Shown here in pieces: positions 6,975 through 63,569 of a stretch of 64,000 bases of DNA; within the stretch, counting starts at the first letter, position 1; each line of letters starts with the position of its first letter. The position numbers and the translations under genes were made by a program. Origin of the DNA: Rhodosorus marinus CCMP1338 (taxonomy: Eukaryota > Plantae > Rhodophyta); the NCBI GenBank assembly GCA_029953675.1, contig JAMWBK010000011.1:1364001-1428000 (forward strand), written 5' to 3'. The notes under the pieces are model-generated. The model made no database searches, was not told the DNA's origin, and was given only the letters and a program-made list of their open reading frames with translations.

Positions 6975-7862
6975 GGTACGTAGGGCTTCAGGCTATGCTA
7001 AGCAGTCCAGTAAAGCGGATTCTCCGTACGAGGCGTCACACTCGCCTCAAGTACATCCTCAGCGAATTTTTGACTCGGATAGGGCATACGGTTGAAGTTG
7101 AGTCGGAACTGCCAAGATCAATCTCGGACTCTGCACCGCCCCGTTGTATAGCCGATCTCCTCGTCTCCGACGCTGCTGCCAGACGCTCAACATATGTGGA
7201 CCTTGCGATTACCTGCCCCGTGGCCAGCGCCCACCTCACCGCAGCCGCCCGCCGCCGGGGGGCCGCGGCTTCAGCCCTTCGAAGAGTTAAGGAACCGGTA
7301 TGCTGAGAGCATGGCCAGTCTGCCTTGCGCTGAGGGTCGCTCTCACCGGTTCCAGCCATTCATTGTGGAAAGCTTTGGTCACGTGGATAAGTCGGGTTTA
7401 GAGTGGTTGCGGAAATGTTTTGCTGAGCATCCTACTGAATATTTGGCGCTCTTGAGGCGTTTAAGCGTCTCCCTTTGGCGATATTCCAGCCACATGCTTT
7501 CCGAGGCGCGCCATCGGCGCCTGGGGTTGCATGCTTCCCTCCCTAGTTATTAGTTCATCTTCACGCCTTGCGTAGCGCTTCAGGCTATGCTAGTAAAGTC
7601 AAGTAAAGTCGGGGGGAGTAAAGCGGAAATGTTTCACTGAGCATCCTGTTGAATACTTGGAACTTTTGCGGCGTTTACGTGTCTCTCTATGGCGATATTC
7701 GAGAAGCATGCTTGCCGAGGCGCGCCATCGGCGCCTGGGTTTGCACGCTTCCCTACCTAGTTCTTAGTTCCTTTTCACGGTTTGCGTAGCGCTTTAGGTT
7801 ATGCTAGTAAAGTCAGTCAGTAAAGCCCAGTAAGCGCAGTAAAGCCCAGTAAAGCCCAGTAC
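6975..7862 (+). mobile_element. Tandem family C 3'-end fragments with (AGTAAAGYCC)n tails
   Basis: RLE fragment ending LHASLPSY* (7553) with tail at 7590-7625; second short copy 7626-7862 ends in AGTAAAGCCC repeats. Confidence 0.88.
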
Positions 7863-8145
7863 AACCAAGCTTTCCCAGATTAACGTAGCCAAGCGCTTAC
7901 CAACCGTGGCGCACAATCGCAAAATCCATCCACGTTTTTCGAGATGTACTGCCGGGGTTTGAAGTGTTTGAGAAAACCAAAGCGCCCTGGTTAGTTCTAG
8001 CCAAAAAAGTCGGATACCAAGCGACCGCGGGGAGCGGTTCTGGGAGAGCGAGAGAGGAGTAGACCAACGAGTACCCACCCGACTGGGACAGAAGTTGTCC
8101 ACCTCCAGGTCCGCGAAGCTGGAGCAACGATCGCCTGCAATACAT

Positions 8146-11100
8146 TCAGCTTGACCTGGACGCTGGATCTTCGCAGCTGCATAGGTTGCCATCTCTACGC
8201 GGGATCTGTGAGATCATGTTTGTTTCACCATCAGTGATCCGACCATGAAGCGACGTCCAAAGAAACGTAACATCGGCGGCAAACTCTAGTAGTCGAGCCC
8301 AAAAAACAAATATAGAGTGCTGTCCCTTCTTCTTACCTCCCCGGGAGGGCATTGAAAGGCTCCCAAGGGGATGCATAAGGCGACTGTTTCGTCAAAGCAG
8401 TCCCCGTCTTGCCCGCAGAAGTCGCCGCAGGCACAGCCACCGGTCTCAAGGTCCAGCAGGACGACCTTTTTAATTTTGATGAAGAGGAACGAACGGGTGC
8501 TCAGTGGACTAGCTCTTGCGAGAACGTTCCGTTGAATTAAGGCTTTCCGGACGCTTACTCCTTCCTCACAACCGGTGCACTCTTCCAGCGGGTGCGTGAC
8601 GGCCGAGGTCACTTGGCACGCCTCGCCACTATCAGTGCAAGTAGGGTATGAGCATTCGATGTCACACCGACAGGCAAGGGTGCCCGGTACGGGAACAGTC
8701 GACTACAGGAGACGAAATTAAGAGAGAGAGCGGGGTTCGCGGCAAAAAATGTCAGACAGTGTTCGCTGGGGGGTGCAACTTCTCAGAGACACTGCGAGGG
8801 CCTACTCCCGGGACGCCATTCAATCTGCAAGGGTCTCCGACCGTCGCCGTTTTTGTAGTGCACTCTAAACCAGTACAAGTGTAGATCGTGCATGTGCTGG
8901 TCTCGTCCAATTTGCAAAAGCAGTCGTCGCCATCTCCGTTAGGGTCAAGTTCAACAGTCTGTGGGAATCGCAAGTTTCCAAAACTGGGTGAGTCAGCTGG
9001 GGCTCGTTCAGGCAGCAAGCCTTACTTGCTTTGTTCCAAGGTGGCGGTTGCATGACACGGCGACGGGTGAAGAAAACCCACTATGCCTTAATGAAAAAGG
9101 TTGCGTACCCCAGGCCTTGTACTGTAGCACAAATCTCCAGTATTTTTGGGCGCGTCAAAAGTGAAACCCACTGAAGTTCCGTTCTCAAGCTCCAGCCGAC
9201 TTTCATATCGGAGACTACATTCATCGATCACCTCACACACGCACACACCCGATTCGGTCTCAACTAGGGTCTGTCAAAAGTAGACAGAGGATGGAGGGGC
9301 ATGTGGACGCATGAACTGAATCAGAGGACATGGTTTGGGGAACAATAGGGAATTCATATTCCTGGAACAGGTTGAAGGCACTTCTTCTTCATCCGGAGAT
9401 GCGAAGTTGTGCAGGAGTGAGACTTGCGCTGTAGGCTTGTTCGCTTACCCCGGCGTTCCCGTTTAAGTTTGTACATGCCACTCCGACCGCCACTATTGTG
9501 GGCTGCGTTGGAATACTGCCGCACAGGGATGAACCGCTATCCAGACACTCCTGATAAACACAGGTATTATAGCAAACGCATTTTCCCTCCGTCGCGTCCA
9601 CAATAGCCCACTGTAAGTGCCCCAGCCCGTCGAGCGTTCGCGGAGAGAAGCAGCAGAGAGCCCACCGGATGACCCAACCGCAGCAAAACCATTTCGCAGC
9701 AGATATCGAAGAGCACGCGGCCAGTCAGGTTTCAGAATTTACAGTCAATACACAGCAAATACTCAGAAGTCATCAGAACAGAAACTTACGCTTGGTTTTT
9801 CGTTGGTACAGTAGGTTGTAGTGGGGCTGCCCTCAAACACGCAATTGTCGCCTACACACCCGAATTCCTCGCACTGGGTTATGCAGAGGCACGTCCCATC
9901 TAGATCTTGAATGGTCTACGTAGGGAGGGCAAGCGGAGGGTGGAGGCGGGGTTGTGAATACAACACGAAAAAAACGGACCCATTAGGTTTCCATGAGCTA
10001 TTTCGTCAGGTGGCCGTCGCAGTGGCAGTGGAGGGGCCAAAATAGGCTGAAAACACCTGCAGCCAAACCACTGCGATTGCTGGATATGGATACACAGACG
10101 ACTTACCCCAGAGACGCCATCGCTTCTGCAGGATTCGCCAATAAACGCCTCCCCCCCGTATAAATGGTCGCATGGAATTTTGGGTGGTGGCCCGCACACG
10201 CACATACCATCATCGCCACGTGAAAATACCTGACAAACCGCATTTACGTACGGTGATTTCAATCGATAGCAAGAAACGGGGCTGCATTAGGTCGCGGGAT
10301 CGTTTCTTTGCCAGATTTCACCTGCTTCTTGAGCAAGGGGGGGGGGGTTATACTGTTGTATATAAAACTCACAGGGGCTGCGTTGGAATTGGATCCATTC
10401 GAATCGAGAGGATAGAGGTTGCACCGTTCGCCGACGTCTACACATTTATCACTTGCAGCAAGGTAGCATGTCGTGTCCTTTGGGCACGGAAAATCTTGAC
10501 AAAAGCAGGTGCTTGAGCCAGCTTCCACAACGAGCACCTGTGCCATGGAAAGAACGCGGGCGTCAGGTTTTCGAGCGCAAGGCGATCGCCTAATCGTCCT
10601 TCTTTTCTATCCCGAGGATGGAACATACCCCGCTATCGCCACTCGAGCTCGTACAGGGGCGGCCAGAAAAACCCTTGGTACCATCAAATTCACACTCAGC
10701 TGCGCAGTAGCATTCGTTTCCTCCATCGAGCAGCAGAAACTGCGTTTAGGGACGTGAGCGTGAGCGTGAGCGATCAACAAAAAAAACCGGAGGGAGGTGG
10801 GTGAACGGCAAATGCGTTGAACAGCTCAGTGAAAAGCAGTTTTCTAGGATCAGCCGGTTTTTGGGAGGGGTTTTCTTACTCCGGGGAGACCGTTCTCATC
10901 ACCGCATGTATCCAGAGGACGGGCGTCTTGCTCGCAGAAGTCCTCGGTACAAGGACATCGGCTAAGCCGGCACAAGCAGTCTTCAGAGTTGGGATCGTTT
11001 ACGAGGACCTGCGCAAAACCCAACGAGAGTTAGAAATTAGTGGAAAGGGCCAGCTGCGGAGCTTTCGACGGATGTCGTTTGGACAGACAAGGCAGGAATT

Positions 11101-13081
11101 AAAGCCCTATCTGAACAAGTCATGGTGGCTGTTTGCCTATGCTCACCCCATCTAGTCCAGAAGTATCGCAAAGAGACCCGGTTCGCCATGCCCCTGTCCT
11201 CCTACAGTCCGAGGGATCATCTACGTCGCAGGTATCATAGAAGCAACTCCTTCCCTCATATAGTTCTGGTTCGCACTGGCAGAATCCTTCTCTCTGCCGG
11301 TCTGGTGCGAGGATCTGTGATGAAACTTCCAGCGTAAGTCCGGGGAAGGACGGGGTCTGACAGGAGCAGAAAGGGCGGCAACGGCTCTCGCTCTGTTCCC
11401 CACCGCTGCCTAAAGTTTCTAGTGCTTTGCTAGCTCACCCCCATGCTAAGGTCGTCCCCGTATCGAATTGCACATTTCTCACCGCTAACGCCATGTTGGA
11501 GCGTCAGTTGTCCAGGCACTTGGTATACGCAGGGAATGCCAGCGCATCCACAACGGAACGGCGACCTGTATGCAATCTATCAACCACCGTCGTGTGGGTT
11601 GAGAAAAGGATATGACCGTTTGTGAGAATTGAGTCACTGCGGATTCGAGAGCTGGGAACGTGGGGCGTATCCATCTGTTTCCTTCGCGTCTCTTCAACTC
11701 TGAAAAGTGAGCGTGCTTTTGAATATGTAGAACCACTCACCCCTGCATACTTGTAGAAGTGGCTACAAGGAGCACCTACTACTGTAGTTGTTTGCAGCGT
11801 CGAGAAAGCACTTGTGAAAATTTCGATCGTACAACTCGTATCCGAGTCTGTACTTACGCACTCACAGAGTCCATCCTCAACAAAGTGCGCCGTCTTAGTG
11901 AAAAATTCGACACAAGAGAGCGCAGTCGGATTTGGTCAATTGTGGGAAGTGTTCATCTAAGGAGAACTTGCGCAAAGGACGCGGACGAGACAGAATTCGA
12001 GTTTGTGATGACGGAGTTGATACTCCTCGCAGGGAAGGGCGGACTCACCCCTTTCCTGAAGCATTGATCACCGGGAGAAAATTCGGTCGAACAATCGAAC
12101 TCTGCAGGATCGCAGTCAGAAATCACACATTTGATTGCGGTCACATCACCGACGTCACATCTGCAGTCACTTTCTGAGCTCTCGTCAATCGATGTTCCCA
12201 CAAGGGTCTGCCAGTAGGTAGACGGAGGTCACAGCGGAAAAAATTTCTGAGCGTCGAGGAAATATTCTAGCCAAGATTGTGATGAATCCAACGAATAGGG
12301 ATCTTCTCGCGCCCACACGCACCCCTCGGAGGCCAAACAAAGCACAAGGACTGCCCAGATCTGTGGAAGATGAGGTACACGAAGCAGATTGCTGAACCCC
12401 GCTTGGAGTGTCTTCATCCACGAGCGTGCAAGTGTAACTCTTGCAGGTCTTGACAGCCGCCGGCAGCGGCAGGTCAGGCGGTAAACAGGGGAGTGACCCG
12501 CACGTGAGCGATATCATGCAGATCCTGGGCTGCTGGCCCTGTCGTTTGAAGCAAGTTTTCGTGTCGTCCAATCCAGCTGGTGCGTAGGAGTATATCAAAC
12601 CCGTTCCGCCCTCGGGAGCAACACCAGCTCGCACCAGGAGCTGCAAGTCTTCACTGCAGCAGTTGCCTTGGAAATTTAGGTCCGAGGCAGGTATGAAAAG
12701 TTTGGCCTTCTTGACCCGTTTCACCTTGGAGACGAACGGATACGCTTCCTGTGTGAGCTGGGGAATGTCCATTCCCTTCAGCAACACACCAGCCTCGAGC
12801 CGCTTGAGCTCGAACTCGTTTAGAGTGGCGTCGAAGGAGATCTCGATGCCGGCAGGAGCGTTCTTGGTGTACTTGACACAGAAGCGCCCGTAGGTCACCC
12901 CACTCCGCTTGAGTTTTCTGCAGAATTTGTTCCTCCCTCCGCTGATGCTCACTGAAGGTAATTCGTTAAGCATAGCGCCGCATTCACCGGAAGCGCCTGG
13001 AACGACACTCTGGGCGAGGCTTCCAGTCGCTTCAATAAACGCGACAACGAAGAGTGCAAAGATCCACCCCCTCGCCACCAT
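8146..13081 (-). CDS. Secreted Cys-rich modular protein, 16 exons (~946 aa): 13081-12323, 12207-12049, 11893-11741, 11576-11439, 11314-11147, 11008-10880, 10739-10629, 10537-10373, 10229-10107, 9915-9790, 9610-9449, 9270-9109, 8958-8806, 8702-8559, 8465-8337, 8205-8146
   Basis: Signal peptide MVARGWIFALFVVAFIEATGSLA. Manual translation gives one open frame using GT..AG introns of 91-191 nt, all phase 0. Every internal exon has a CxC motif and usually a late GxxC. The true 3' end is uncertain. Confidence 0.8.
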
Positions 13082-13751
13082 GGCCGAACGATTGAGCAAC
13101 CAAGCAATCCACAGTCCCAGAACGGATGCCTACCAACCCAAACACACACCTTCTCACTACGACTTATGCCAACGAGCAAACCCACCCGGATAGCGCTCCA
13201 GAACACATAAAAAGGGATAAACAGCCGCAAGCACCGAATGTCAGTTCTCTTCCAATCCTGACGTACCCGAACTCCAACTATGCATATATGATATCAGTGC
13301 ACACCCAACAAATCTTCCATGCACATGGGCTCTTGTGACGCAAAGGGAAAAATCGACCGAAATATGCTGAGGCAATAAACCATTCATCATCATCAGAGTA
13401 GGAGTATAAAATAGGCTACGTTAGCGTAGAATATGAGAAGGCGAAAGGGAAAAGGTAGACAAGTAACCACCAACAGAGCCTCCCTAAAACCCAAACCTAA
13501 GCAAAACATCCTCCCCAACCCTCCAAACCCCTTCCCCCCCCCAATAATAGGGATGCGCCCAGAAAGGGTTGCAGTAGTAAAGGCGCAAATTGTTAAAAAG
13601 GATTCGATGGATATTCAAAGTGGAAGCTGGAGTAGGCCATGGACCTTCAGTGCGACCTTAGTCGATCCTAGTCTTCCTTCCACTTGATTTTGTTTTTGCA
13701 TCCGATTAGCCAGATTAGCACTCTGCGGTGTGCACGACCAAATAAAAGAAT

Positions 13752-14350
13752 CCACTGTTTTTTTCTGTTTTTTTATCTCTAACGGTTTTTTTATCTCTAA
13801 CTGCTTTTTTAGCTTGTATAAAGAAACGACTGTTTTTTTCTGTTTTTTTATCTCTAACGTTTTGTTTTTTTTATCTCTATCTGCTTTTCTAGGTTGTATA
13901 AAGAAACAACTGTTTTTTTTCTGTTTTTTTATCTCTAACTTTTTTTTTTGATCTCTAACTGCTTTTTTAGGTTGTAGTTCGCCACTGTCTCCCTACACCT
14001 CGTAAAAGAAGCGCCTGTTTTTTTCTGTTTTTTTATCTTTAACGTTTGTTTTTTTGGATATCTAACTGCTTTTTTAGGTTGTATAAACAAACGACTGTTT
14101 GTTTTCTGTTTTTTTATCTCTAACGTTTTATTTTGATCTCTAACTGCTTTTTTTGGTTGTCCAAAAAAACGTAACTGTTTTTTCTGTTTTCTTAACTCTA
14201 ACGTCTTTTGTTTTATGTCTAACTGTTGTTTTAAGGTGTAGTTTGCCACTGTCTCCCTACACCTTGTAAAAGAAAGGACTGTTTTTTTCTGTTTTTGTTT
14301 TATCTCTGACGGTTTTTTTAGGTTGTAGTTTGTCTCCCTACACCTCGTGA
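13752..14350. repeat. T-rich minisatellite, about 7-8 units of ~78 bp and ~105 bp
   Basis: Recurring CTGTTTTTTTCTGTTTTTTTATCTCTAAC...CTGCTTTTTTAGGTTGT. Long units add GCCACTGTCTCCCTACACCTYGTAAAAGAA. Confidence 0.9.
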
Positions 14351-14639: not shown

Positions 14640-17600
14640 TAGGCGCTCGCGCAGAGGACCTTCCAGCTTTGGCGATTGCGGCCCATTTTGGGCGCCTTTC
14701 CCGGGTTCAGCAGAACCTACTAGATCGGCTCCCAATCAGCGGTTTTCTGTATTCTGCTCTTAAGGATTTTCTTGCCTCACAGACTTCGCTTTTGGAGACT
14801 CATCCTGTTTTTCTTCTTCAGGTGTTTCCCATGGGGCGTCTCTCTGAAGGCACGTTTCCTCTCATGGATGTGGAGGAGCCTCCTGCCATGGATAGTGCTG
14901 GCGGGGATCCGGTGGATCCGCTCGCTATCGAGCCGAGCACCCCCGAGGCCTCGGGTGTTCGGCGTCGCGTTGCCGGCTCTTTGGCGGCTGCTTATGCGTC
15001 CCTCTAATCTCTGCGTCTCCCTCCGCCCAAGCGTCCTCTTTTTGAGGCCAGGGGCGGGGGACAATTCTTCTCCTTCCCACCCTGATTGGCATCCCAATGA
15101 CGCTTCCTCCGGAGTGAGGGAGCAGGATATCCGAGTTCCTCCGGGATCCTTGCGAGCTCCCTGCTTTTTTCACTCTTCCGGGTAGTTTTGAGGACTGGCG
15201 TTCTACCCTTTTCCCCTGGTTTGCGGGGTTCGTAGCCCGTTTCCCTTTGGGGATATTCCTCTCTGCTCTCACTCCCGCCCACACTCTCACCCTCATTGCT
15301 TGCGTAGGCGGGTGTCTTTTCTTCTAGATTTTTTGCTGCTGGAAGTGGCTGACCATCATCAGGAGCCATTAGGTTGGAAACTAATGTTCATTTTCCCTCG
15401 TCTCGTCCTTACGGTCTCAAAAGGGCGTAACACATGCCCTATTCGCGGCAAAGTTCAAGCTTTTCTAGCTTGAAAGGAAGCAGTGGGGCAGAGGGATATG
15501 CGACGGGTTCGTCAATCCTTCAGCATGGCGCGTCAGTCGAACCTTATCGGACTGACCTGGCTGACGCAGTCACCGCGTTGTTTCCTGTGCACGACGTGAG
15601 TTGGAACGCTGGGTTCCAGACCCCTTCGCCGCCGCTCCGCAGGACACGGGTCGGGTGTTCGTCCGGTTTGATGAGGTTCAGGCTCTTATCGGGTCCGCTC
15701 CGCGACACTGTGCACCGGGTCCCTCTGGATTTCGCGTCGAACTCTTTCAGTGGTTGGGTGAGGACGGCTTGGACGCTCTGGCTCGAGTGCTTGAGGGCCT
15801 TGTCAATGGGGATGACCTTTGTGCGGATGCTTGGACGTAAGTGTCCCGCTCCCAGCTTGCACTGCTGCCCAAGCCTGGCCATATACGCCAGACACCTTCC
15901 TTGCGCCCAATCGGGATGCGTGAGGCGCTGCAGATGCTCGCGAGTCGTTTCCTCTCGCGCCGGTTCACTCTGGAAGCACGGAGTTTTTTTGGGCTGACGC
16001 AGGTCGGCGTCGGGTATTCCGGGGGTTTTGAATTGGTTTCTCGCGTACTTCAATTGGATGGTCCGCGCGATGAACCTTTCGGTACGCTCTCGGTCGATTT
16101 CACCAATGCTTTCAACAGCGGCTCTCGGGTTCATGCGCTGGAGGTTGTTCGTCAGTTGTTCCCGACAAGGTTCGGTTTCCTGCGGCGCGTCTACGGTGAG
16201 GGTCCAAATGGCCCCCGCCTTGACACCTTGGGCGTGGACACTCACACTTTCACAGCCCATACTGGGGTTCAGCAGGGGGACCCTCTCGGGCCTTTCCTCC
16301 GCGCCTGCGGATTACAGTTTGTGTTGTTGCGGCTCAAACACCAGTTCCCCAGGATCCGTGTCGTTGCCTTTCATGATGACGTGACGCTCCTCGGCACTCC
16401 GGATGATCTGGTGCCGGCTTACGATTTCCTCGGGGAGATGGCCACTTCGGTGGGCCTGTCGATATACCACGCGAAATGTGACTTCTGGGGTGACTCTCTG
16501 CGCACCGCTGCAGAAGTGCCCTCAAGATTTTTGGATATCTGGCGCCCAGAGGGTTTCATCCATTTTGTTGTCCCGGTAGGCACGCTGAGCGTTATCGAGC
16601 GCACCCTTGGCGAGCGAATGAGGGAACATGAGTCGCTGCTGGCCGAGTTGTGTCGGCTCCCTGAAGGGTTTTTGAAGACGGCGATGCCCATCTTCTGTTT
16701 CAGTGCGTGCCAGCGTTTGAACTATTTCCTCCGGCAGTTGCCTTCTCATTGGGGGGCATGGCTGGCCCTTCGAGAAGATCAGCGTGCGCGGGAAGTGTTG
16801 GGCTCCTTGCTGGACACGGATTTCTCTACACTTGAAGGCACCGACACGGACACCCTCCACCGACAGCTCGCTTTACGCGTCCGGCTGGGCGGGCTGGCCG
16901 TGGGGTCTTTTGCGCCCATCCAACCGGCGGCACTGGTGAGTTCATGGGCCAACTCGCTCATTACGTGGTCTCCCGAGGGCGATTCGAATGTGCGAGGTTT
17001 GCTCTGCGGCCTTCGTGAGGGGCGATTGGATCAACTTCTGAGCTCGCGGCTTGGTGGCCTGTTCGAGGAGTTGGAGAAAGCGCTGCAAGCGTGTATTACC
17101 GTACCCACTACTACACTGCCCCGCTATGGTTCTTGGCGGGCAGTTCTGGATTCCTTTCACGCCCAGGTCCCGGCGGCCGAGGCGGGTGGCGGACGGATCG
17201 CGCAGGATGTTGAGGCAGCCGGAGCTGTCGCTGATGTAAATGTTGATGCGGATGATGCTGAAACGGATGATGTGACCGTGCCTTCACGGCCGCCAGAGGA
17301 CTCTGTTTCTGAGTTGGGCCGGGTCCCATCGAGGAACGATGTAATTCAAAAGGCCCTATCATGGGACATACATCGCAACTCTCATGCCTACCTCCTGAGT
17401 TCACCGTCCCCTTCGGCCTCTACTTTGGCAAGCCTCCGCGGTTTGGGAGGTAGCCTGAGCTCGCATTTTTTTATGGTCATCCCTGCATATCCGCGGTTGG
17501 TGCTGGCGGATTTTGAGTTGCGGGTGGCCTTCCGCTTGTACCTGGAGTTACAACAACCCCCTTGGCCGTTTGGGCCAGATTCGATGTGCACTCTTTGCGG

Positions 17601-18235
17601 CGCTTCTGTGACCGTAGGTGATTCCGGTTTACACTTGTTGGCGTCTTGTGCGGAGGTCCAGAGAGCCCGAACCCGACGTCACACGCGGATAAATCGTTTG
17701 CTCTTTCGCTACCTTTGGTCGCAGGTACTCGGCACGGCCCGGGAGGTCGAGTATGAAGTTCCTTTACCAGTGGCAGCGGCAATTGAGGGCGAACCTGGTG
17801 GTGGACGCGGCAATGTGGTGCAGCGAGTTGCAGATCTTGTGGTGTCTGACCTGAATGCTCGTCAAAGCGAGTACATCGACCTTTCGATCCCATGCCCCAA
17901 AGCTTCCAGGTACTTGCCAGCGTCCGCCCAGCGTCAAGGAGCAGCCACTCGGTCGGTGCGGTTGTTGAAGGAGTCCCAGTACGCTGCGGGGATGCCGGAA
18001 CCCGCCCTACGCGACTCTGCGCTGTCGTATCGGTTTGTCCCCCTCACCATCGAATCCTTCGGCTTGGTTGACAGTGTGGGTTCTCGTTGGTTGCGTGGTA
18101 TTTTTGATCGTGACTCAGAGAGGTCTTGATAGCCTCCTCACGGAGCTGTTTTTGGCTCTTTGGCGTTGCAACGTTGCTTTGTTATCGGATGCACGTCATC
18201 AGCGTCTTGTTTCCCGTTTCTCAGGGTAGTTAGAT
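14640..18235 (+). mobile_element. Family D2 CRE-like element, 5'-truncated within ORF1; RT + Zn knuckle + RLE, with stops/frameshifts
   Basis: 15841-18129: RPIGMRE, SVDFTNAFN, QQGDPLGP, AFHDD, GGL, CTLC..HLLASC, RTRRH, VADLVV, YIDLSIPCP, PLTIESFG. 14669-15007 resembles D ORF1 (LKDFLASQTSLLETHP vs LEAFLSTEATLLEAHP). Confidence 0.92.
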
Positions 18236-24080: not shown

Positions 24081-27000
24081 TCAACACCTGGATCGGTTAA
24101 CTGCGACGATTTCGATATTGTCCGGACAGGTCTCAGAGATGGCGACAGCGACTGCCTCGGATAAGCCCTGAATCCGCCTAGAGGAAATGCTCAATACCCC
24201 GAGAACCTCGTTTGAGCTGATGACGACGCCATCTGCTTGCTCCCATGAAACTCCCTTCGGCTTTTGAGGCCATTCCCAGGATACCTCAAGGATCTTCGGC
24301 AGGTTCACAGCAGCATCCTTCGACGAGAAAGTGATCATACAGGCGCTAGCCGTCTCACCGGAGAGTCTCGTCACGGATGCAACCTTCTCTACTGATACCC
24401 TGTAAGAACTGCAACCCGCTTTCGGCTCGCGGGCCACGGTTTCCGGCAGAAGTAGCTCGGTCGATGTTTCAGCCGGAGCCGTTGTCGGGGACGTCGTAGG
24501 AGTCCCAGTATAAGTCGGTGTCGGCGTGGGTGTCTGAGTCGGAGTCGCTGTCGGTGTCGGGGTTGGAGTGGGAGTCGGGGTCTCATCCGAATCGAAAGAG
24601 TTGCACATGATTGGAATTGTCGAGTTGAGGGCGTCGGCAAAGCTCGACCTCACGTAGCTTCCGGTGAAGTAGAGTCGAATGTTGGTAATGCCCTTGATGT
24701 CCTGGAGCCTGGCATCGATCTGATAGTTGCTGAATGGGCTTATGTCGATGAATTTCTCCGTCGAGAAGACGGCATTTTGTCGGATGTAGTTGGATGCCAT
24801 CCACTCCTTGATTTCCAGCTCGTCACAAGCAGGTGCACCCCCAAAGTACATAAACGTTCGCTTTCGGTTGGCGTGCGTATACTTCTTCACGTAGTACATC
24901 GAGTCCTCATCATCTTCCGCCTCTGCAACTCGAGCGACTCCGGACATGCTCTTGTGCGTGATGTCGACGACTGGACTCGTCTCATCCGACACGCCGTCAA
25001 AAACGACAAACATGCTGTTCATCGAGATCATGGGGAAGAAGAGCGGATCGTCCAGTCCCGGGAGATTGTTGAAAGCCGGATGCGATGGGTCAATGCAAAA
25101 ATTGATCGACCCCGTCTCCAGAAACTCCGCCCAGTTATCTTCTCCTACTGTATCCGCTTTGATATTGTAAGGGCCCCAAAAGGTGCCATACTCCATCAGT
25201 TGGCCTTGCGTGTAGGTGGTCTCGTACCAACTCTTGAGCGACTTGCGAAGTTGAATGATCGCGTCAGACGCACAGCTGAAGTATAGGCTCCCTGATGTGT
25301 CCAGAAGGGAAGTTTCCCACTCGCAGTTCGCGAGGCTAACGGTGTCTACCGACGACATCGAGCCCATCATGAGATAGTTCCTCGCGGTGAAGACGGCCTC
25401 CAGATCTCGGTGAAAATCGGCTATCAGAAGGTTGTAGTTGGTCTGGTGAGCGGTCTTAACAGCCGGTGCAGCGGGATTTATCATGTTGTTCTTCATCTCG
25501 ACCGCCAGTACAGCCACGACGTTCTGGAGGTAGAGCTTTGTCGCGGTGACCTGCTTGAGGTAGCTCATATAGGATGAGTAAAGCGCGATGAGGTCGTTCT
25601 TTTGGTTGACCCACATCTCCAACCCATCGAATGCCCGAAGAAATCCAGTCGCCGAGGTGTAGCACTCGGTTTTCATGTACCCCACGTAGTCTTGGAGCTC
25701 TTTTCTGTCAAGCGCCACCATCCCGTTACTAATCGAGGTTTGAACATCGTTAACTTGAGCAGCTAGCGCGACGGCTTCGTCATAGTCGTCCGCACTGTAG
25801 ACGCTCTCCAGCGGATCCGCGAGCGTCTCTGTACCCTCCGTAAGAAATCCAATATCGGCCATGATAGCGTCGTAGCTCACTTCATAGTTTGACCAGTCGG
25901 CGCTTTCTCCCGGCGAAGGGAAAAAGCCTATCAATTCGTTCGTCAGCGAGGGTATCGTAGCAAACTTGGGGTTACTGCTCAAGGTCTCAATGCCGGCGAA
26001 AACCGCCTTCGTTGTATCACCGAGCGACTTACTGTCGGTAAAACTGCCGACTTTGGACATTGCCTTGGTCACTGCGAATGCCGCGTCGAAGACGTTCGCA
26101 AAGAAACTCACAAACTGCATCACCTTGTTGAACTTGGCACGCTTTTCGACCTTACGCCAGCACTCGTCCATTTTAGCTTGCTGCGACTCCATCGTGCTCT
26201 GGTACTTCCAAATGTTCTGATCAGTCACGGACATCGACCGGTTCACCTCCATGATCTCCTCCATCAGCGCCAGCTGCTTGGCCAGCTGCGAGTCGATACC
26301 CGTCTGCGCGTTGCTCGTCGCGTTGGAGAGGAGCTCCATGGAAGCTTCCGAATCCTCAACGCTGCTTCGGTAGGCGTCGTAGTAGTACTCCATGGATTCT
26401 CCGAGCTGGCGCTGTGTTTCAAGGTAGTCGAGCAGGTACTCAAAGCTCATGACGCTGAGCTGGTTGGCATTCGTACCGGAGGAGGTGGTCAACGGATTCG
26501 CACCCTTGATAATAGAAATCGCCTTGCCTGCTAGCGAGGTGTACTTGGCTTTCTCCGTCTCGTCTGAAGTCTGATTGGCCACTAGCTGAGCATTGTAGAG
26601 CATATCGGAAACTGACAGGAGAATCATGGTGTACGCGTTTTGGTTTTCTTCGGAGTCATCGTTGAAGAACATCATATCCAGCATCCTCTTCGAGAGGCTG
26701 AGACCGTAGTCGATGTACGCCAACGGCTGAGGAAAGTTTTCGTGGGCAAAGGACCGCGGATCGTCGTAGTCATTGGTGTCCCACTCCTCCACTTCAGCGC
26801 CGATTGTTGCTCGGAATAACATCGGTAGCGGATCGTGAGGCTTCTTTCCCTTCCACCCAGAGTTGTTTGATATTCCCTTGTTGCCGTGAAGTGGATAACC
26901 TGACAATGAAACTGTTTCGTAGTAGTTTACGTTCAGAAATGGGCCCTTCTGCCATGTTCGCGTGTAGCAGTTCGTCGTGAGCTGGCCCCCTATTCCGGGC

Positions 27001-28011
27001 TCTCCTGGCTTCCCGCCAGGCCCTCCTCTGCCGGGATTAGATTCACCATTGAAAGAAATCAGCTGCTTCTTCATTGCTAAGGGCCCCATCTGCTTCTCCT
27101 CCGACAACAACGCTCGAGTAAATCTGTACGGTTCCTGCATGTCCACCAGGTCCACCTCTTCCTCCTTGTCCCGCCTGACCACCCGACATCGGATAACCGG
27201 GCTGATAGTACACACATTTCTTCTTGGGTCCGTTCTTGGTACCTGTAGGACACTCCTTACACCAAGAATCTTTGCATTTCCCAGCCACCCAGTTTTTCTT
27301 CTTGCCGCACTCGACTCCATCGATCGGCTTCTGTGCATTACCTCCGTCTCCACCATATCCACCGGTACTACCGTCGCTCCCATCAGTTCTTATGGTCATG
27401 GTATATCCTCCCTCGATTAGGCCCTCGATGTTCATGTACTTGGCGACCATGATGAAGCTTCCCCCCTGGTTGCCCGGACTGCCAATGGCTCCCGTACCTC
27501 CCGGTTTACCCTTTTTACCATGGCGATTCACGTTGACATCCTTCGTTCTCACCACAGGATCGGGGGTCTTCGGCGTGTCTGGCGCGATCGGTGGAGGTAC
27601 CGTGACCTCCGTTGCCTTCAGGTTGATCTCAAAATCTCCATCGCTCTGAATCTCAATGATATTCGCGACAATCGTCACGTTCGTACCCCGCATCTCAGCA
27701 GCCACCCCTGCCGCGCCCTTGATCAGAACGTAGTACGCGTATACTATGATATCCTGCTCAGTTCCAAACAACTTTGTCGTGCCCGTGCTATTCGACGTGA
27801 AGTCCATCGTGTAGAAGAACGGTGCATAGATTGCAAACGTTCCGCTCTCATCACCGTCCACGTATCCAGAACTCACATCCTGAGCCATCAAACACGTGGT
27901 ATTGGAGAATCCCCATCCATCACACACGCTCACGTCATCAGCACTCACTCCTCCGAAGCAGAGGAGCATCGCGAAGGTCATAGACCCAACCACCGCAAAC
28001 GTTCGCTTCAT
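24081..28011 (-). CDS. Large secreted protein (~1300 aa): Gly-rich/collagen-like N-terminus, long helical region, putative TcA-like C-terminal domain, PT linker; one frame break near 27050
   Basis: ORF 27043-28011 (signal peptide MKRTFAVVGSMTFAMLLCFGGVSA, GXX runs) overlaps ORF 24081-27383 in another frame, and the Gly-rich pattern continues across the junction. Functional label is inference. Confidence 0.75.
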
Positions 28012-45343: not shown

Positions 45344-47980
45344 ATGTTCTGGAAGTTGGTGATATTCTGTCTGGGATTATTCGGTGTTATTAGCATCACC
45401 TCGGCTCAGGTTCAGTATGGACATCAGTCATGCAACAAGGATCTTCTTAAGGATGACTGGAAACCCAAGAGGTATGAGCGATTCTCGGAAATTTTGGCTA
45501 AGACGCCGCATGGGAAGCCGGTTAAGATACCATGTGGAGTGGCGGTGATTGTAGATACTAAAGATATCCCCAAAGTTAATGGAATTGAGGTTCTCGGGCT
45601 TCTGTATGTACCTCCGAACGTTGGTAAGCTTGTGGTTAGAACTCAGTACGTGCTTGTGACGGGGTACCTGAGGGTCGGAGATGAGCGAGGGATGCGAAAG
45701 GGTAGCAGGGTTGATTTCGTTCTGGACAACTTTGACTACAAGCTGAAGGATGTCATCGTGAATTCTGAGGAACTGGAGATCGTAGGTGGGAAGAACGAGG
45801 TTGTAGGTAGTGACGGGAGACTTGGACGACTGTCGTTTGCTGTGATAGGGGGACAGATTGAGATTCATGGGCTTGCTAGAAAAGATACTAGATCTGTACA
45901 CAACCTCCTACATCGGAGGGCGGAGAAGGGAGATGAAGAGATTACTGTGGAGGAGCCGTGCGAATGGCCGATCGGGTCGAGAATTCTGATTGCTACGACG
46001 AGCTACCGTAAGCGGGAAACGGAGGAACGGGTGATCAAGGGGACAAGCACCAATTCTAAAGGTATGGCGGTGCTGAAGCTGAACAGACCGCTCAAGTACA
46101 AGCACCTCGCTACCGAGGATTCGTACGAAGATGTGAAGGGCTACAAGGTGGAAATGCCCGCGGAAGTTGTGCTATTGACTCGGCCTGTGAGGATCAGCAG
46201 GCGTAAGACGAGCAAGCAGTCAAGCAAGTTCGGACCGCACTTGATGGTAGCGAACACACAACTCAAGCAGGTGATCCACGGCGTGGAGTTTGTCGAGATG
46301 GGTCAGCTGGGGACGCTCGGGAGATATCCGATTCACTTCCACCTGTGCGGAAAAACGGATTGGTCTGAAGTCTATGGATGCAGTATATTGCGAAGCAATC
46401 AGCGCGGCATAGTAATCCACGGAACCGACAAGGTAAAAATCTTCGACAACGTTCTGTACGACGGGGCCGGACACCAGATCATGATGGAGGACGGAATCGA
46501 GGAACAGGGAAAGTACTACCGCAATGTTGTGGTCAACTGCGACGCCATCCGAAGACGTGACCTGCTTCCTGACTCTAGTGATGATCAAGTGTCTGGAATC
46601 TGGATATCCAACCCGAGAAACGAGTTCAAGGGGAACAGGGTAGTCGGAAGTGAAGTTGCTGGCATCTTTACTGAGCTGAGGGCCGTCACAGGACCATCCA
46701 AGGAACTCCCACGTGCGAAGAATTTTGATCCTAGGTTCGAGCTCCTCGATCTCTTCGTGGACAACGTCGTCCACACCAACGGGGAGTTCGGGCTATGGTT
46801 CAACGGCTGGACACCGCCTAAGAGGGTCTCTGTGGGGCGCATAAACTCATACAGAAACCTGGTCCACGGGGTGCTAATGGAATTGAGTTCGAGCTTGGAA
46901 CTCCACGACAGTGTGCTCGTAGACAACGGAGGAGGGATCGACTTGGATCGAATGCACAACTCGAGGGTGAGCGACTCTCTTATCGTTGGGAAAAGCAAAA
47001 TGCCCGGGGCGAATTGTCCAAAGGCTCACTCGGTCGAGTTTAAGAATAGAATGTTTGAGAGGGAGAGCCGATCAGCATACCTCGCTAATGTGACATTTGA
47101 TGGCTTCAAGGACTGCAAGTCTACGGGTGTTGTAGGTGTACAAGGAGACGATCCTGCCGTCCAGTTCAACGGTTGGAGTACGAGCACCGGGCTGCGCAAC
47201 TGTCATTTTCTGGATATTGGACCTGATCAAGGCTTTGGTCTAAGGAACGCCGAAAAATCGGACTTTCAGTGGTCCGAGTTTGTGGCTATTCCCGCTAGAG
47301 ACACAACGTGGGGGAAGAAAACGATACCCAATGGTTTTGCCATCGCTGACACACCGTTTATGGTCCCCGACCCAAAGAGGAAGAAGTGCGTGGCGATCAG
47401 GGAGTTTGGAAAGTTCTGTTCGGGCGTTTGCTTCAGAACGGTGAACGTTCAGCTGACAGTGGATAGTATCTTCGACCTTAGCTATCAACTTGAGGTGATC
47501 AAGGTGGACGGAAAACTTAGGTCCGAAGTAGTAGTAAGTCCGTTTAAGAGTATCCTGGCCCCCACCAAGTTGCAGTACTTCTTCACGGTGGAAACCGCTG
47601 TTAAGTACGCTGTTAAACTGAGGAAGCAAGACAACAGGCCCTTTCCCACGCGGATGTTTGTGGACGTAGGAGATCAGGACCTCAGATGCACGCGGGGAGA
47701 CATTCTGCTCGACTTTGAGATGGATGGGTTCTCACTTGGCAGAGCGAGAAAGGAAAAGCAACCAGCCAAACGCTACTGGACTGGGTGCCGAAAAAAACAC
47801 ACGCCAAGCACTAGTGTGTACTACCAAGACAAGTGCAAGGGGGGCAAGATGTTCAGGAGGGTTACTATCCCTCACAAGGCCTTGCCCTACAATCGCCAAC
47901 AGGTGCTTGCCTCGAGCGGTCTCGAGTTCAACATTAACGAGGGTTCACCAAAATGTAAAACCGACAAGACCTGCGACTAG
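45344..47980 (+). CDS. Secreted G8-domain / pectin-lyase-like beta-helix protein (CEMIP/TMEM2/fibrocystin-L-like), 878 aa, intronless
   Basis: Signal peptide; G8-like beta strands with conserved Gly (IEVLGLLYV, VLVTGYLRVG, AVIGGQIEIHG); VVLLTRPVRI; GRYPIHFH hallmark; IVIHGT, GIWISNPRNEFKGNRVVGS. Confidence 0.88.
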   Translation: MFWKLVIFCLGLFGVISITSAQVQYGHQSCNKDLLKDDWKPKRYERFSEILAKTPHGKPVKIPCGVAVIVDTKDIPKVNGIEVLGLLYVPPNVGKLVVRTQYVLVTGYLRVGDERGMRKGSRVDFVLDNFDYKLKDVIVNSEELEIVGGKNEVVGSDGRLGRLSFAVIGGQIEIHGLARKDTRSVHNLLHRRAEKGDEEITVEEPCEWPIGSRILIATTSYRKRETEERVIKGTSTNSKGMAVLKLNRPLKYKHLATEDSYEDVKGYKVEMPAEVVLLTRPVRISRRKTSKQSSKFGPHLMVANTQLKQVIHGVEFVEMGQLGTLGRYPIHFHLCGKTDWSEVYGCSILRSNQRGIVIHGTDKVKIFDNVLYDGAGHQIMMEDGIEEQGKYYRNVVVNCDAIRRRDLLPDSSDDQVSGIWISNPRNEFKGNRVVGSEVAGIFTELRAVTGPSKELPRAKNFDPRFELLDLFVDNVVHTNGEFGLWFNGWTPPKRVSVGRINSYRNLVHGVLMELSSSLELHDSVLVDNGGGIDLDRMHNSRVSDSLIVGKSKMPGANCPKAHSVEFKNRMFERESRSAYLANVTFDGFKDCKSTGVVGVQGDDPAVQFNGWSTSTGLRNCHFLDIGPDQGFGLRNAEKSDFQWSEFVAIPARDTTWGKKTIPNGFAIADTPFMVPDPKRKKCVAIREFGKFCSGVCFRTVNVQLTVDSIFDLSYQLEVIKVDGKLRSEVVVSPFKSILAPTKLQYFFTVETAVKYAVKLRKQDNRPFPTRMFVDVGDQDLRCTRGDILLDFEMDGFSLGRARKEKQPAKRYWTGCRKKHTPSTSVYYQDKCKGGKMFRRVTIPHKALPYNRQQVLASSGLEFNINEGSPKCKTDKTCD

Positions 47981-54529: not shown

Positions 54530-57500
54530 GCCGGCTCTGGATGTATAGATACAGTTTTTGGTTTCGTGAGGGTGTATGGTGCTGGCTTTTGGTAGTTTTG
54601 AGTCGCAATTGTGTTCTTCGGTGGGAGGCGCTTCTTTCTGCAGCCTTTCCCCCGCATCTTCTAGTGGTGTGGTGCGTGCTGGGGGTTGCTAGCGCCCCTT
54701 GGAGGTCGTGGTGGTTTTTGTTTGGTTGCAAACGTTGGGAACAAGTTCTCTTTTTGGGGGTTTCGTGGGGGAATCGGTTTTTCACACCTTCCAATCGTTA
54801 TGGTTGGGGTTTCCCCACCCATTCCGGCGGACGGAGCCGTTCTCTCAGCGCGCGTGGAGCTCTGCGTGGGCGGGTTTAGTACCGCGGCCACCCTCACGGA
54901 CTGCGCTGACGAGTTAGCCCATGGGATCTGCTCGAAACTGACGAGTCTTCTTGTGACTGCTTCCCAGGAACACCGCCTGCCCCTGCTGATCGCCTATTTG
55001 GAGCGCTTCTCCGCCTCCGCGCCTGCCCCATACCCCCGGTGCCCGTCCCCGCGGATCCGCACGGTACAGCGGGGCCTGCCTCCACCCGACCCGAGCGCTC
55101 CGCTCCGGTCATTCCTGATTCCGACTGGCCTACCCCTATTCAAGGACAGACGCCTCCTGGGCCCGCGTCGGGCCCGAATCCTGCTCCCTCCAGTGCCCCA
55201 CGTGCGACCTATTCGCAGGTCCTACGCAGGGGCTCTTCTGAACAACGCACGACGGCAATGGTGCGTATGATGCCACAACACATCCCTATTGACTCTTCTC
55301 GCCAACTATCTCCGTTCCACTTTGTTTGGATGACGAACGTGCGTCCCCAGACCCCCTCTCGTGGTCGGGGCCGCGCGCCCGTCCACTACCGCGATTTTCG
55401 CGACACCATGGCTTCCTCCTTGGGGTCGCCCCGTCTGAATTCCTATATGTGGACTTCACGGGCCCTCATGCCTGTTTTCTTGTTACTGACTCGGCTTACC
55501 AGTTCCTTCAATCCCTTGTAACCACCCCCGCGCCCCAGCGCTCTGCTCTGGCCAACATGATACTGACTCGTCCTCATGTCTCTTTGTTTGTCGAGTTCGA
55601 TCGTTTTGACGCCGGCTGGGTTCCTCCGTCGCCCTTGCAAAACCTGGATGCCTCGCAGGCTTCGGTTGTCGCGCTACACACTCATGCGGCGCGGCTCTCG
55701 CGCATACAGGCGAGCCTCTTCGCGCGTTTTCCTCCTCGCGGGGTCCTCCGCACCGCGCTAGAGGCCTTCCTCTCCACTGAGGCCACCCTGCTGGAAGCCC
55801 ACCCTGCGTTTGACCTTCTGCCGCCGACTCTTGAGCACCCTTCCTCCCCTCGCCCTGCCTCCGAGGCTCGTGACACCGACATGGCAGAAGCACCATCGGC
55901 CTCTCCGAATCCGCTGGCTCTGGACACCCTCAGTCAAGACTCCGCTGCTGAAAACCCTGTGTCTACTTTCTTCAGGTCTTTTAGTTCCTTCGTGCGCCCT
56001 CCACGTAAGCGTCGTGCGGCTCCTGAGCCTCCCTCCGAGGCACCTCCTCCGGATATTCGATCTGCCTTCCCGACTGAGGGGAGGCCCGATGTCTGAGTCT
56101 TCCTCCTCCGCGTGCGTGTCGTCCCGGTTACCCCTGTTTACCAGTGACCGCTCAGCCTGGCATGAGCGTGTTCTCTCGTGGTTTTCGCACCTTGTCGCCT
56201 CCTACCCGGACGGTTCCTTCCCCTTTGTCGTCAGAGCACGGCCGTACGGCTCCCTCGTCGACTTCATAAGCCCCTAGGATTGGTGTTGGATTTTCTCTGG
56301 CAGCAGGTCGCCGCGAACCCTCACTGCTCTCTTCGCTGGGAACTCTTGTTCTTTTTTCCCCGCCTCGTGCTCACCTCCTCTACCGTCCCCCTCAACCCAC
56401 ATCCTCGCCGGGTCCACCCTCGCCGAAAACTGCAAATGTTCCTTTCCGGCGACTTTGAGGACCTCGAACGTCTTTATTTCGCTTCTCTCTCTTCCTTTTC
56501 TCCTAGTGCTCCCTCAGCTTTTAGGTCTTCTCGACAGAATCGGGCGCGTCACGCGGTGGCAGGCGGTGATCTGCGGCGGGCAGCCGGGATCCTCCAGCAG
56601 CGGCAACCTGTGGTTCCATACTCCGATGATCTTTCTTCACCGCTCCGTTTGCTCTTTCCCTCGGAAGGCTCCCCTTGGGACTCCTCGTTTGAATCAGTGT
56701 TGGAAGAGTACCGCGCCGCGCCACATCCCAGTGCGCGGTTAGTGGTCAATCTGGAGGCGGTGCGTGAGTTGGTTCATGATGCTCCGAAGGGCCGTTCCCC
56801 AGGGCCCTCGGGGCTGCGGGTGGAATATCTCCGTTTCTTAAGTGATGAAGGTTTGAAGGCGTTGGCGTGGGTGGTCGAAGCGCTTGTGAATGGTGATCCC
56901 CTGTGTGAGTGTGCGTGGTTCTTGGTCGGGCGTTTTCAGTTGTGTCTGCTTTCGAAGCCCGGCCACACGGCCTCGAGCCCTGCTATTCGCCCTATTGGCC
57001 TGGTTGAGGTGGTCCGCAAATTGGCGGCGCGATGGTTAGTGAAAATCTTGGTTCCCGAATCCCGCCGTTTCTTTGGGCACGTGCAGTTAGGCGTGGGCTA
57101 TCGTGGTGGCTGTGAGTTGTTGTCTGTTTTACTCCGTTCGGAAATGGCGTACTCCCCAGATTCTGGGCTCCTCTCTGTAGATTTTACCAATGCGTTCAAC
57201 CGCGTCTCTCGTCCGGCTCTCATGCCCGTGGTGCGCGAAGTCTTCCCTGTAGGCTTTCCCTTTGTTAGTAGACTTTATTCTCCGCTTGGTCGTGGGGCTA
57301 CCTATGACACCCTTGGCGCTTCCTCACACACGTTTGCGGCGCGCACAGGGGTACAACAGGGTGATCCCTTGTCCCCTTTCCTACATGCCTGTGGACTACA
57401 ACTCGTCTTGCTTTGTCTTCGCTCCGAATTCCCGCAGGTTCGTACGGTTGCATACCACGACGACGTGTGCCTCCTGGGGCCCCCTGATACTCTAGCACTC

Positions 57501-59292
57501 GCTTATGATCGTCTCCGCTCCTTGGCTTCGCGGGTTGACCTGGAGGTTAATCATCACAAATCGTTCTACTGGGGAGGTGTAGCTGCACAAGAGCAGCAGG
57601 TACCTGCGTCGTTCCAGGATATTTGGAGACCGGATGGTTTTGTCCACTTAGGCATCCCCTACGGGTCGCCGTCCTTCGTTGAAGGCGAGTTGCTGCAGCT
57701 CCTCGGTAAGCACAGACAGCTGGTTGCAGAGCTTCGACGGCTACCTCCGGGCTTTCTCCAGTGCTCGTTGTTGCTGTTTCGGTATTGTTGCAGTCAGCGG
57801 TTAACCTATTGGCTTCGCTCACTTCCAACTCATTGGGGCCGGTGGTTGGCCACTCGTGCGGATGCTGAAAGTTTCCGTGACCTGGGATATTTTCTCGATG
57901 AAGAGCTGAGCGCTCTGCCGCGACCCACCTGTGATGTTGTGCGCGCCCAGGTAGGCCTCCCATTGCGATTGGGGGGACTGGGCCTCTGCAATCGTGTTGT
58001 GGTCCAACCTGCAGCCGCAGTAGGGGCCTGGGGAACCGCACTTCCCACTTTGAGCAGCTTGGGTATCTCGAAGTTCCGCAATTTGATGGCGAGCCTCTCG
58101 CGGGGTGTCTTGCTTCCCAGCGTACCGGAAAGCGCCCAAGACTTGTTTCTGGAGCTCCAAACCGCCCTGAATTCCTGTACTAGTCTCCCCGAAACCGTTC
58201 AACCCCGTCTTCCTGACTGGCGAGCTGTATTTGACCGCTCTCGAGGCTCCGCCCCGGGGATTCGTCCTGCGCCTGAACCTGTTCTAGGGGAGATTGACCC
58301 AGTGGTTGCCGCAGAAGAAGAAGTTCCAGTTGATCCTCCTGATGGTTCCCAGCGCGCTGGGAGCCGAGCTCAAGCACGCACGGATGCGCTGCAAAATATC
58401 CTTTCTTGGGACTTGCACCGTGCTGCATATGGCCGACTCCTCGCGCAGATGGTCTCATCTTCTCGCGCTCGCGCCCGCCTACGTAGTCTTGGAGGGGTTA
58501 TTAGCTCTCAGTGGCTCATGACCGTACCAGCCTTTCCGCCACTCACACTGTCGGATTTCGAAGTGCGTACTTCACTGCGCTTATACCTCGGCTTACATCA
58601 GCCCCCTTGGCCGTACGAGATGGGTTCGTCGTGCCCTCTGCTGCTCTCAGACTGAAGACAACGCAGATTTTGGCGCCCACCTGCTCGCTAGTTGCCCGGC
58701 GGTGAAAGGTGCTCGAACCCGCCGCCACACACGGATCTTGAACCTGTTATACCGGGAACTTCGGCCTATAGTCCGGCAAGCCGGTCTGGAAATCGAACGT
58801 GAGAAACCTTTACCCGTCGCGGACTTTCAAAATGATGAACGCCGTGTAGCCGACCTGGTGATCACCTGTGACGACAGCCGCCGTACCACATACGTTGATC
58901 TTGCTGTTCCTAACCCTCAAGCTAGTCGTTATCTCCCGGCTGCGGGGGAGCGCCGTGGATCTGCCGCCGCCAGCATGAGACGCCGCAAAGAGATCAAATA
59001 CGCGGGGGCTTTGTCTTCCCCTGGTGTTCGTGCTTCGGCACTAGCACATCGCTTGGTACCCCTGATCATTGAGTGCTTTGGGTTCATGGACTCTGTTGGT
59101 TCTCGCTGGCTTCGGGAGTTGTTCCGCGAACGCCCTGACCGTCTTCAATCGTTGTTTACCCGCTTAAGTTTCCTGCTGTGGCGCATGAATGCCGCTTTGA
59201 TGTTGGAGGCGCGAGTACTTCGCCGCGCTTAGTCTTTTTTTCCCCTCGGGGTTTTTTTTTTCAGCCTCCGATTAAACCATTCGTTCGTTCGA
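54530..59292 (+). mobile_element. Apparently full-length family D CRE-like element (~4.8 kb): ORF1 (~54690-56096) and ORF2 (ATG 56089 to 59232), with several frameshifts/stops
   Basis: SPGPSGLR, RPIGLVEVVRK, SVDFTNAFN, QQGDPLSP, AYHDD, GGLG, HLLASC, RTRRH, VADLVI, YVDLAVPNP, PLIIECFG; tail CATTCGTTCGTTCGATT. 5' end supported by the homologue at 39440-39935. No TSD found. Confidence 0.92.
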
Positions 59293-63530: not shown

Positions 63531-63569
63531 CACTTAACCTCAAGAGTCAATGGCCAAGACTAATCATCA

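Follow-up and report, generated by a model that had tools for sequence, protein, structure and literature searches.

Serial exon-intron duplication likely built an array of cysteine-rich modules in a predicted secreted protein of the red alga Rhodosorus marinus

A 64,000-nucleotide stretch of contig JAMWBK010000011.1 from Rhodosorus marinus CCMP1338 (assembly GCA_029953675.1, positions 1,364,001 to 1,428,000), which we call the window and number from its first letter, carries on its minus strand a gene for a cysteine-rich protein in which each internal exon encodes one small module. The complete eukaryotic coding sequence (CDS) occupies positions 8146-13081, with an ATG at 13081 and a TGA at 8148-8146, and is divided into 16 exons by 15 introns of 91-191 nt. 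All 15 introns have GT..AG borders and all are in phase 0, an outcome with a probability of 1e-4 to 6e-8 under independent placement of the introns. Each of the 14 internal exons spans 37-56 codons, and in 11 of them the last codon encodes glycine, the exceptions being exon 8 (Pro), exon 10 (Ser) and exon 15 (Glu); the motifs DCRCD, LCECV, FCQCE, CFCQ and CVCG are found in exons 2, 3, 5, 8 and 9, respectively. This structure had been proposed in an original prediction for the stretch, and its coordinates, 15 phase-0 introns, codon range, 11 glycine ends and motifs were all reproduced. The same prediction stated that the open reading frame (ORF) track misses the gene. This is true of the bacterial-style ORF list, which shows exon 1 only, as a 304-aa ORF, but the gene is already present in GenBank: the spliced protein is 99% identical to the 'hypothetical protein' KAJ8901529.1 (NDN08_007373) of R. 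marinus CCMP1338. It is also 80% identical to a transcript-derived protein of MMETSP0315, another Rhodosorus strain. New here are the position of the module outside known families and the presence of one module per phase-0 exon throughout the array. The long-read genome assembly of CCMP1338 comprises 31.2 Mb, 8,392 genes and 24,821 introns, that is about 3 introns per gene (PMC10250338), and R. marinus is therefore not intron-poor. With 15 introns, the gene has about five times the genome mean, which is notable but not bizarre.

All coordinates of the gene refer to the minus strand. The 5' untranslated region (UTR) extends at least over 13082-13169, as nt 90-178 of the complementary DNA (cDNA) contig L001 from the other strain align to 13169-13082. 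Exon 1 (12323-13081, 253 codons) codes in the gene model for a signal peptide and a basic, cysteine-containing head, and is followed by the modules. Most of these are delimited by the gene model, the orthologous protein and cDNA together, namely module 1 in exon 2 (12049-12207, 53 codons, 6 Cys), module 2 in exon 3 (11741-11893, 51 codons, 4 Cys), module 3 in exon 4 (11439-11576, 46 codons, 4 Cys), module 5 in exon 6 (10880-11008, 43 codons, 6 Cys), module 6 in exon 7 (10629-10739, 37 codons, 4 Cys), module 7 in exon 8 (10373-10537, 55 codons, 6 Cys), module 8 in exon 9 (10107-10229, 41 codons, 4 Cys), module 10 in exon 11 (9449-9610, 54 codons, 6 Cys), module 11 in exon 12 (9109-9270, 54 codons, 4 Cys) and module 14 in exon 15 (8337-8465, 43 codons, 6 Cys). 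Module 4 in exon 5 (11147-11314, 56 codons, 6 Cys) is placed by the acceptor at 11314 that the other strain's transcripts use, and module 9 in exon 10 (9790-9915, 42 codons, 6 Cys) by the gene model and the orthologous protein. Module 12 in exon 13 (8806-8958, 51 codons, 6 Cys), from which the structure model described below was made, and module 13 in exon 14 (8559-8702, 48 codons, 7 Cys) follow the gene model. Exon 16 as translated (8146-8205) was assigned by alignment to the other strain; it consists of 19 codons and the TGA and holds the start of module 15.

The predicted introns are real and the gene is transcribed. Contig L001 is about 80% identical to the window, and the ends of its aligned blocks coincide with all predicted exon ends; likewise, the other strain's protein is colinear with the spliced model, without gaps across any of the 15 junctions. 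At intron 4, two in-frame acceptors lie 42 nt apart (11314 versus 11356; window 11315-11356). The GenBank model takes the upstream acceptor (exon start 11356), which adds 14 amino acids, TPSFPGLTLEVSSQ, also carried by the database protein P0001, whereas all transcripts of the other strain take the downstream acceptor at 11314. The upstream site was either annotated in error or serves as an alternative 3' splice site.

To compare isoforms, we used seven transcript forms, contigs L001-L006 and a further MMETSP protein, P0003, from the MMETSP/JGI transcriptome (MMETSP0315). Over nt 1-2965, the part with the head and modules 1-15, the seven forms are 100% identical. The only differences are insertions of 133, 135 and 127 nt, which are the canonical GT..AG introns 15, 16 and 17. 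The retained introns occur in the combinations none, 15, 16, 17, 15+16, 16+17 and 15+16+17, and introns 1-14 are always removed. No exon is missing in any of the seven forms, which are short-read assemblies from one culture of the other strain. Retention of introns 15-17 is incomplete processing of the 3'-most introns and not cassette use, and it would fit a slow or late removal of introns near the 3' end.

The mature protein of about 920 aa is acidic (isoelectric point, pI, of 4.3) and contains 9.8% Cys. Its two parts differ in charge: the head (about 230 aa, 13 Cys) is basic with a pI of 8.7, and the array is very acidic with a pI of 4.05. A signal peptide is predicted at residues 1 to about 23-24, coded by 13010-13081. 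Its n, h and c regions and an SLA/Q cleavage site were read from the sequence, and SLA/Q would fit the -3/-1 rule. KD19 exceeds 1.6 at residues 5-23 only, and there is no other strongly hydrophobic segment. With an N-terminal signal peptide and no other membrane-spanning segment, the protein is predicted to enter the secretory pathway.

The module framework was evaluated against 20,000 composition-preserving shuffles of the 14 internal exons. In all 14 exons, the first two Cys form a CxC at residues 8-15 (shuffle mean 0.43, maximum 5), and all 14 have a hydrophobic start, defined as at least two hydrophobic residues among the first five (mean 6.0, maximum 13). The terminal Gly of 11 exons compares with a shuffle mean of 1.6 and a maximum of 7, and none of the 20,000 shuffles reached any of the three observed values. 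In the module alignments, C1-x-C2, C3 and C6 are invariant, and this CxC...C...C scaffold allows two disulfides in every module. Nine of the 14 modules add a third Cys pair, C4/C5, of which both members are absent in the remaining five. As these two Cys are present or absent together, the pattern suggests that they bond to each other. Typically, a lead of 8-14 residues is followed by C-x-C, 3-9 residues, C, 4-5 residues, C, 4-7 residues, C, 6-15 residues, C and a tail of 3-16 residues, and the Cys count is even in 13 of the 14 internal exons. Outside of this framework, the modules share little: identity between modules is 15-39% and mean column identity 22-24%, and the description of the sequences between the cysteines as highly divergent thus applies to comparisons among modules. 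The original proposal of a modular, Cys-rich protein that is secreted and in which every symmetric phase-0 exon encodes one module is supported. Exon 9 contains an RGD tripeptide (VFSRGDDGMCVC), which is kept in both strains and lies in an exposed hairpin turn before the CxC; in a red alga it is probably without meaning.

Framework, intron position and intron phase are common to all 14 modules, and the symmetric-phase introns coincide with the module boundaries, as each internal exon is 0/0 and holds one module. The simplest history behind the same intron position and phase in every module is the repeated tandem duplication of one exon-intron unit, and serial exon-intron duplication, as originally predicted, is supported as the best explanation of the array. 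The duplications appear to be old. Normalised pairwise module similarity does not exceed 0.20, no higher-order period is present and exon-exon DNA matches are at most 19 nt long. In blastn comparisons of the introns with each other and with the window, no match beyond chance 9-21-mers was found, which argues for old duplications and against introns that are introner copies. Introner- or transposon-derived introns were accordingly rejected, the introns being neither alike nor copied elsewhere in the window, and so was a recent expansion or higher-order repeat, given the missing periodicity and the almost complete lack of exon-exon DNA similarity.

The strain comparison rests on two sequences and has no power for site-level selection tests. 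Orthologous modules correspond 1:1, are colinear and are 62-93% identical between the strains. The synonymous divergence (dS) is 0.29 and the ratio of non-synonymous to synonymous divergence (dN/dS) is 0.40 overall, 0.34 in the head and 0.49 for the non-Cys codons of the modules. Per module, dN/dS ranges from 0.12 to 0.73 and is nowhere above 1, with exon 10 (module 9) as the most diverged module (62% identity, dN/dS 0.73). Upstream of the 3' frameshift described below, 90 of 90 aligned Cys are conserved, and intron 15 is 79% identical between the strains, compared with 88% for exon 15. These values indicate that the modules are under purifying selection. The array had originally been called hypervariable, but its divergence is an old one between paralogous modules, and the orthologues have kept their aligned cysteines upstream of the frameshift.

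The two strains differ in exon number, with 16 exons in the window and 18 in the other strain. Compared with the unspliced transcript L002, the window carries a single 281-nt deletion with its joint at about 8163/8164, which takes out the remainder of exon 16, intron 16 in full and the first part of exon 17. The deletion fuses modules 15 and 16 out of frame, leading to the stop at 8146, and the protein ends about 110 aa early. Remnants of the lost 3' part can still be followed downstream on the same strand. An untranslated remnant of exon 17 (8079-8163), found by alignment to the other strain, reads ...PGQAECIAGDRCSSFADLEVDNFCPSR in the +1 frame and is followed by the old donor GTGGGT. The old intron 17 (7949-8078, GTGGGT...GGCAG) is homologous to the intron 17 retained in L002 and P0003, and the old last exon (7880-7948, YISKNVDGFCDC...) has an intact module start but, compared with the other strain, lacks stretches of 38 nt and 26 nt. 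Since the old exons and intron are recognisable and have suffered further deletions, the 3' difference points to a real loss followed by decay and not to an assembly error. It would also show directly that the number of modules is altered in the DNA itself, between adjacent modules. If the chimeric exon 16 were skipped, exon 15 would be joined in frame to the old last exon, which is a prediction only. A pseudogene was rejected for exons 1-15, which are expressed, are under purifying selection and have kept their Cys, and decay is seen downstream of the deletion only.

Searches for relatives of the module returned the protein and its orthologues only. Neither the spliced protein (946 aa) nor exon 1 matched any Pfam-A family at E<=10 in hmmscan. 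Two module profiles, A1 in the exon register and A6 in the junction-straddling register, gave only noise at E<=10 against the PDB sequences (PDP-24, E=0.16, and a ferredoxin, E=0.14), as did the head encoded by exon 1; a tandem-module alignment, A2, was dropped because MAFFT mis-registered the overlapping pairs (313 columns). As a positive control, a Notch pair of epidermal growth factor (EGF) domains was run against the same PDB set and detected at least 70 distinct EGF chains. An exhaustive HMMER search with the module profile over 1.84 billion representative proteins had the protein itself as sole match, in 14 stretches. Word-seeded searches, one each for the full protein, for exon 1 by itself and for residues 500-1058, found two Rhodosorus orthologues (P0001/P0002) only, so that within the low reach of the profile no other gene or architecture with the module came up in either type of search. 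A scan of metagenome contigs gave no match, and a literature search found no work on the protein or on a comparable red-algal array. Judged by these searches, the module appears to belong to no described domain family. In a leave-one-out test, 8 of the 14 modules scored better than composition-matched shuffles, with scores of -4 to 15 bits. Due to this weak profile, the negative results exclude similar long arrays but not distant single modules.

Structure prediction added little. For an in-phase unit of two modules, the AlphaFold (AF2) model had a predicted local distance difference test (pLDDT) score of 42.9 and was unusable. The model of a single module with a 30-row multiple sequence alignment reached a pLDDT of 59 and shows two consecutive beta-hairpins, with unreliable coordinates, and a Foldseek search of the PDB with this low-confidence model gave a best E of 2.6, no EGF match and no neighbour. 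Because the predictions are this weak, the disulfide connectivity is unproven, and so is the equation of the fold unit with the exon.

Taken together, we think it likely that the locus is a transcribed nuclear gene for a secreted array of disulfide modules that arose by old exon-intron duplication, evolves under purifying selection and is spliced constitutively in the available transcripts. We propose that one exon-plus-intron unit was tandemly duplicated repeatedly, long ago. The modules then diverged almost beyond recognition, with purifying selection keeping the cysteine scaffold, and module number still shifts in the genome by deletion or duplication between neighbours. The resulting protein could be a secreted, disulfide-stiffened, rod-like acidic stalk of 14-15 modules, which presents the basic head. 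The most economical guess, and a speculative one, is that it serves in structure or adhesion, either on the cell surface or within the mucilage matrix.

Several points weigh against this interpretation. What the protein does is purely our inference. The module profile, with its scores of -4 to 15 bits, leaves room for distant single modules elsewhere, and other Stylonematophyceae may be thinly covered in the databases. The pLDDT values of 43 for the module pair and 59 for the single module are low. Short-read assemblies from a single culture of the other strain could miss rare skipped isoforms. Finally, exon 1 (13 Cys) and exon 14 (7 Cys, the only internal exon of this kind) have odd Cys counts. 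A disulfide bridge between modules, a disulfide to another molecule or an unpaired Cys may account for them.

The alternative that survives best, although we consider it unlikely, is that the array is a highly divergent EGF-like repeat in which each domain straddles an intron, so that C1-C3 would close one exon and C4xC5...C6 would open the exon after it. It would agree with the automatic UniRef name of P0001, 'EGF-like domain-containing protein'. A junction-centred register does give six invariant Cys, with the CxC at the place of the EGF C4-x-C5 and a conserved Gly before it, and the AF2 models, weak as they are, place beta-hairpins at the strand-CxC element. As a matter of general knowledge, small disulfide folds can also be related without any sequence signal. 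The module and the EGF-like domain are alike in being six-Cys, small, beta-rich, acidic units with a G-x-C-x-C element, arranged in tandem and extracellular. However, no model of the Pfam EGF clan or any other matched the spliced protein at E<=10, the profiles in both registers matched no PDB EGF chain at that threshold in the set in which the Notch pair finds at least 70, and no EGF protein was matched by the profile among the 1.84 billion representatives. The PROSITE patterns EGF_1 and EGF_2 do not match either, which is a lead only, and Foldseek, run with a low-confidence model, gave no EGF match. Furthermore, 5 of the 14 units would have no EGF C1 and C2, which would orphan their partners C3 and C4. 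Modules with four Cys cannot be explained by an EGF domain that simply lost one of its disulfides. The spacing of the loops also departs from that of EGF domains, with C2-C3 (6-15) and C3-C4 (about 11-26) exceeding the textbook values. As the EGF tests fail in both registers, the UniRef name is not backed by sequence tests, although a relationship at the level of the fold is conceivable.

A second possibility, which we regard as improbable, is that the module is a genus-restricted new disulfide fold that arose de novo in Rhodosorus and was amplified by exon duplication, with gain, loss and occasional skipping of phase-0 exons yielding surface or matrix variants that are specific to a strain and perhaps also to a condition. 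If true, the protein would be a red-algal, independently invented counterpart of the modular extracellular-matrix and recognition proteins of metazoans.

It seems very unlikely that the gene encodes a positively selected, fast-evolving surface or secreted molecule, for instance in host-microbe or mating recognition, whose diversity is carried by the loops and the module number. For a conserved gene, a dN/dS of 0.40 (0.49 in the non-Cys codons of the modules) is rather high, with values of 0.70-0.73 in some modules; the strains differ in module number, and the gene is an orphan, restricted to the genus in current data. But no exon has a dN/dS above 1, the modules common to both strains are 1:1 and colinear, and the difference in module number is an out-of-frame deletion followed by decay, which looks like loss and not like adaptive variation.

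The least probable reading, for which we see very little room, is the one first put forward for this gene, in which the exons are symmetric cassettes whose regulated skipping creates a combinatorial set of isoforms, for a variable molecule that acts in adhesion, in recognition or in an immune-like way: it draws on a secreted protein with 14 of 14 internal exons in phase 0/0, so that any skip stays in frame, and with an even Cys number in 13 of them, so that removal need leave no unpaired Cys, but it meets seven MMETSP0315 forms that are identical over modules 1-15, skip no exon and vary by retention of introns 15-17 alone, very divergent modules that each have a 1:1 orthologue and are not interchangeable, dN/dS below 1 everywhere and introns without conserved elements. 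Phase symmetry comes automatically with the duplication of an exon together with its intron and is therefore not evidence of regulated skipping. Splicing looks constitutive, and the module is not a known domain. A functional analogy could be drawn to the Dscam-type cassette arrays, which likewise combine a long run of in-frame exons of similar size with an extracellular protein. Unlike these, the Rhodosorus gene displays no alternative exon use in the seven transcript forms, and its exons are unique and orthologously conserved, without common intronic elements.

We return to the interpretation that we favour, an old array built by exon-intron duplication, and to the known systems it resembles. 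Ciliate immobilisation antigens and Giardia variant-specific surface proteins (VSPs) are secreted or surface-bound, have periodic Cys frameworks with divergent loops and are lineage-restricted, and we mention them as a lead only. They typically form intronless multigene families with CxxC-type frameworks, whereas the Rhodosorus gene is single-copy, with an intron per module and a CxC framework, and a sequence relation to protist Cys-rich surface proteins was not detected by the profile among the 1.84 billion representatives. In metazoans, the exons of extracellular modules are typically of phase 1-1 according to textbooks, whereas those of the Rhodosorus gene are 0-0; in addition, the Rhodosorus module fits no EGF or other Pfam model and its host is a unicellular red alga. 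Otherwise, the gene is similar to the mosaic extracellular proteins of metazoans that have an exon for every module (EGF arrays of the Notch, fibrillin and LDL-receptor type; Patthy's exon-shuffling modules), in which secreted tandem disulfide modules of about 40-55 aa have boundaries that coincide with those of exons, and symmetric phases permit the in-frame duplication or deletion of a unit. The general principle of phase-symmetric module exons has been described (PMC3632108). Due to the observation that the module is found in no other protein, the array would stem from intragenic duplication and not from shuffling between genes.

The gene could serve as a clean, transcript-verified example from outside the animals of how the amplification of a single exon-intron unit builds a protein, and for red algae it offers a case in which exons were duplicated within one gene. 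It is also a candidate component of the poorly known extracellular matrix in unicellular red algae, and its analysis corrects both the automatically assigned 'EGF-like' name and a splice acceptor of the public gene model. For the time being, the gene opens up no question of long standing.

The surroundings of the gene contain repeats on both sides. A T-rich tandem repeat array (13743-14320, with units of about 80, 185 and 264 nt in 2-3 copies) lies about 0.6 kb upstream of the 5' UTR. Just downstream of the gene, a 214-nt tandem repeat in 1.9 copies (7409-7815) is followed by a CAGTAAAGCC microsatellite in 4.5 copies (7818-7861). The locus is flanked by retroelements, with RVT_1 (reverse-transcriptase) ORFs at 15841-18129 and 56178-58655, both on the plus strand. 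Among the other ORFs of the window, the one at 24081-27383 on the minus strand (1100 aa) has no Pfam match. The original prediction also held that the other host genes need no introns, and this stands for the part that was checked, as both ORFs concerned are continuous: the plus-strand ORF at 45344-47980 encodes a CEMIP-like beta-helix protein of 878 aa, and the minus-strand ORF at 59478-63533 encodes an intronless, full-length ABCB-type transporter of 1351 aa.

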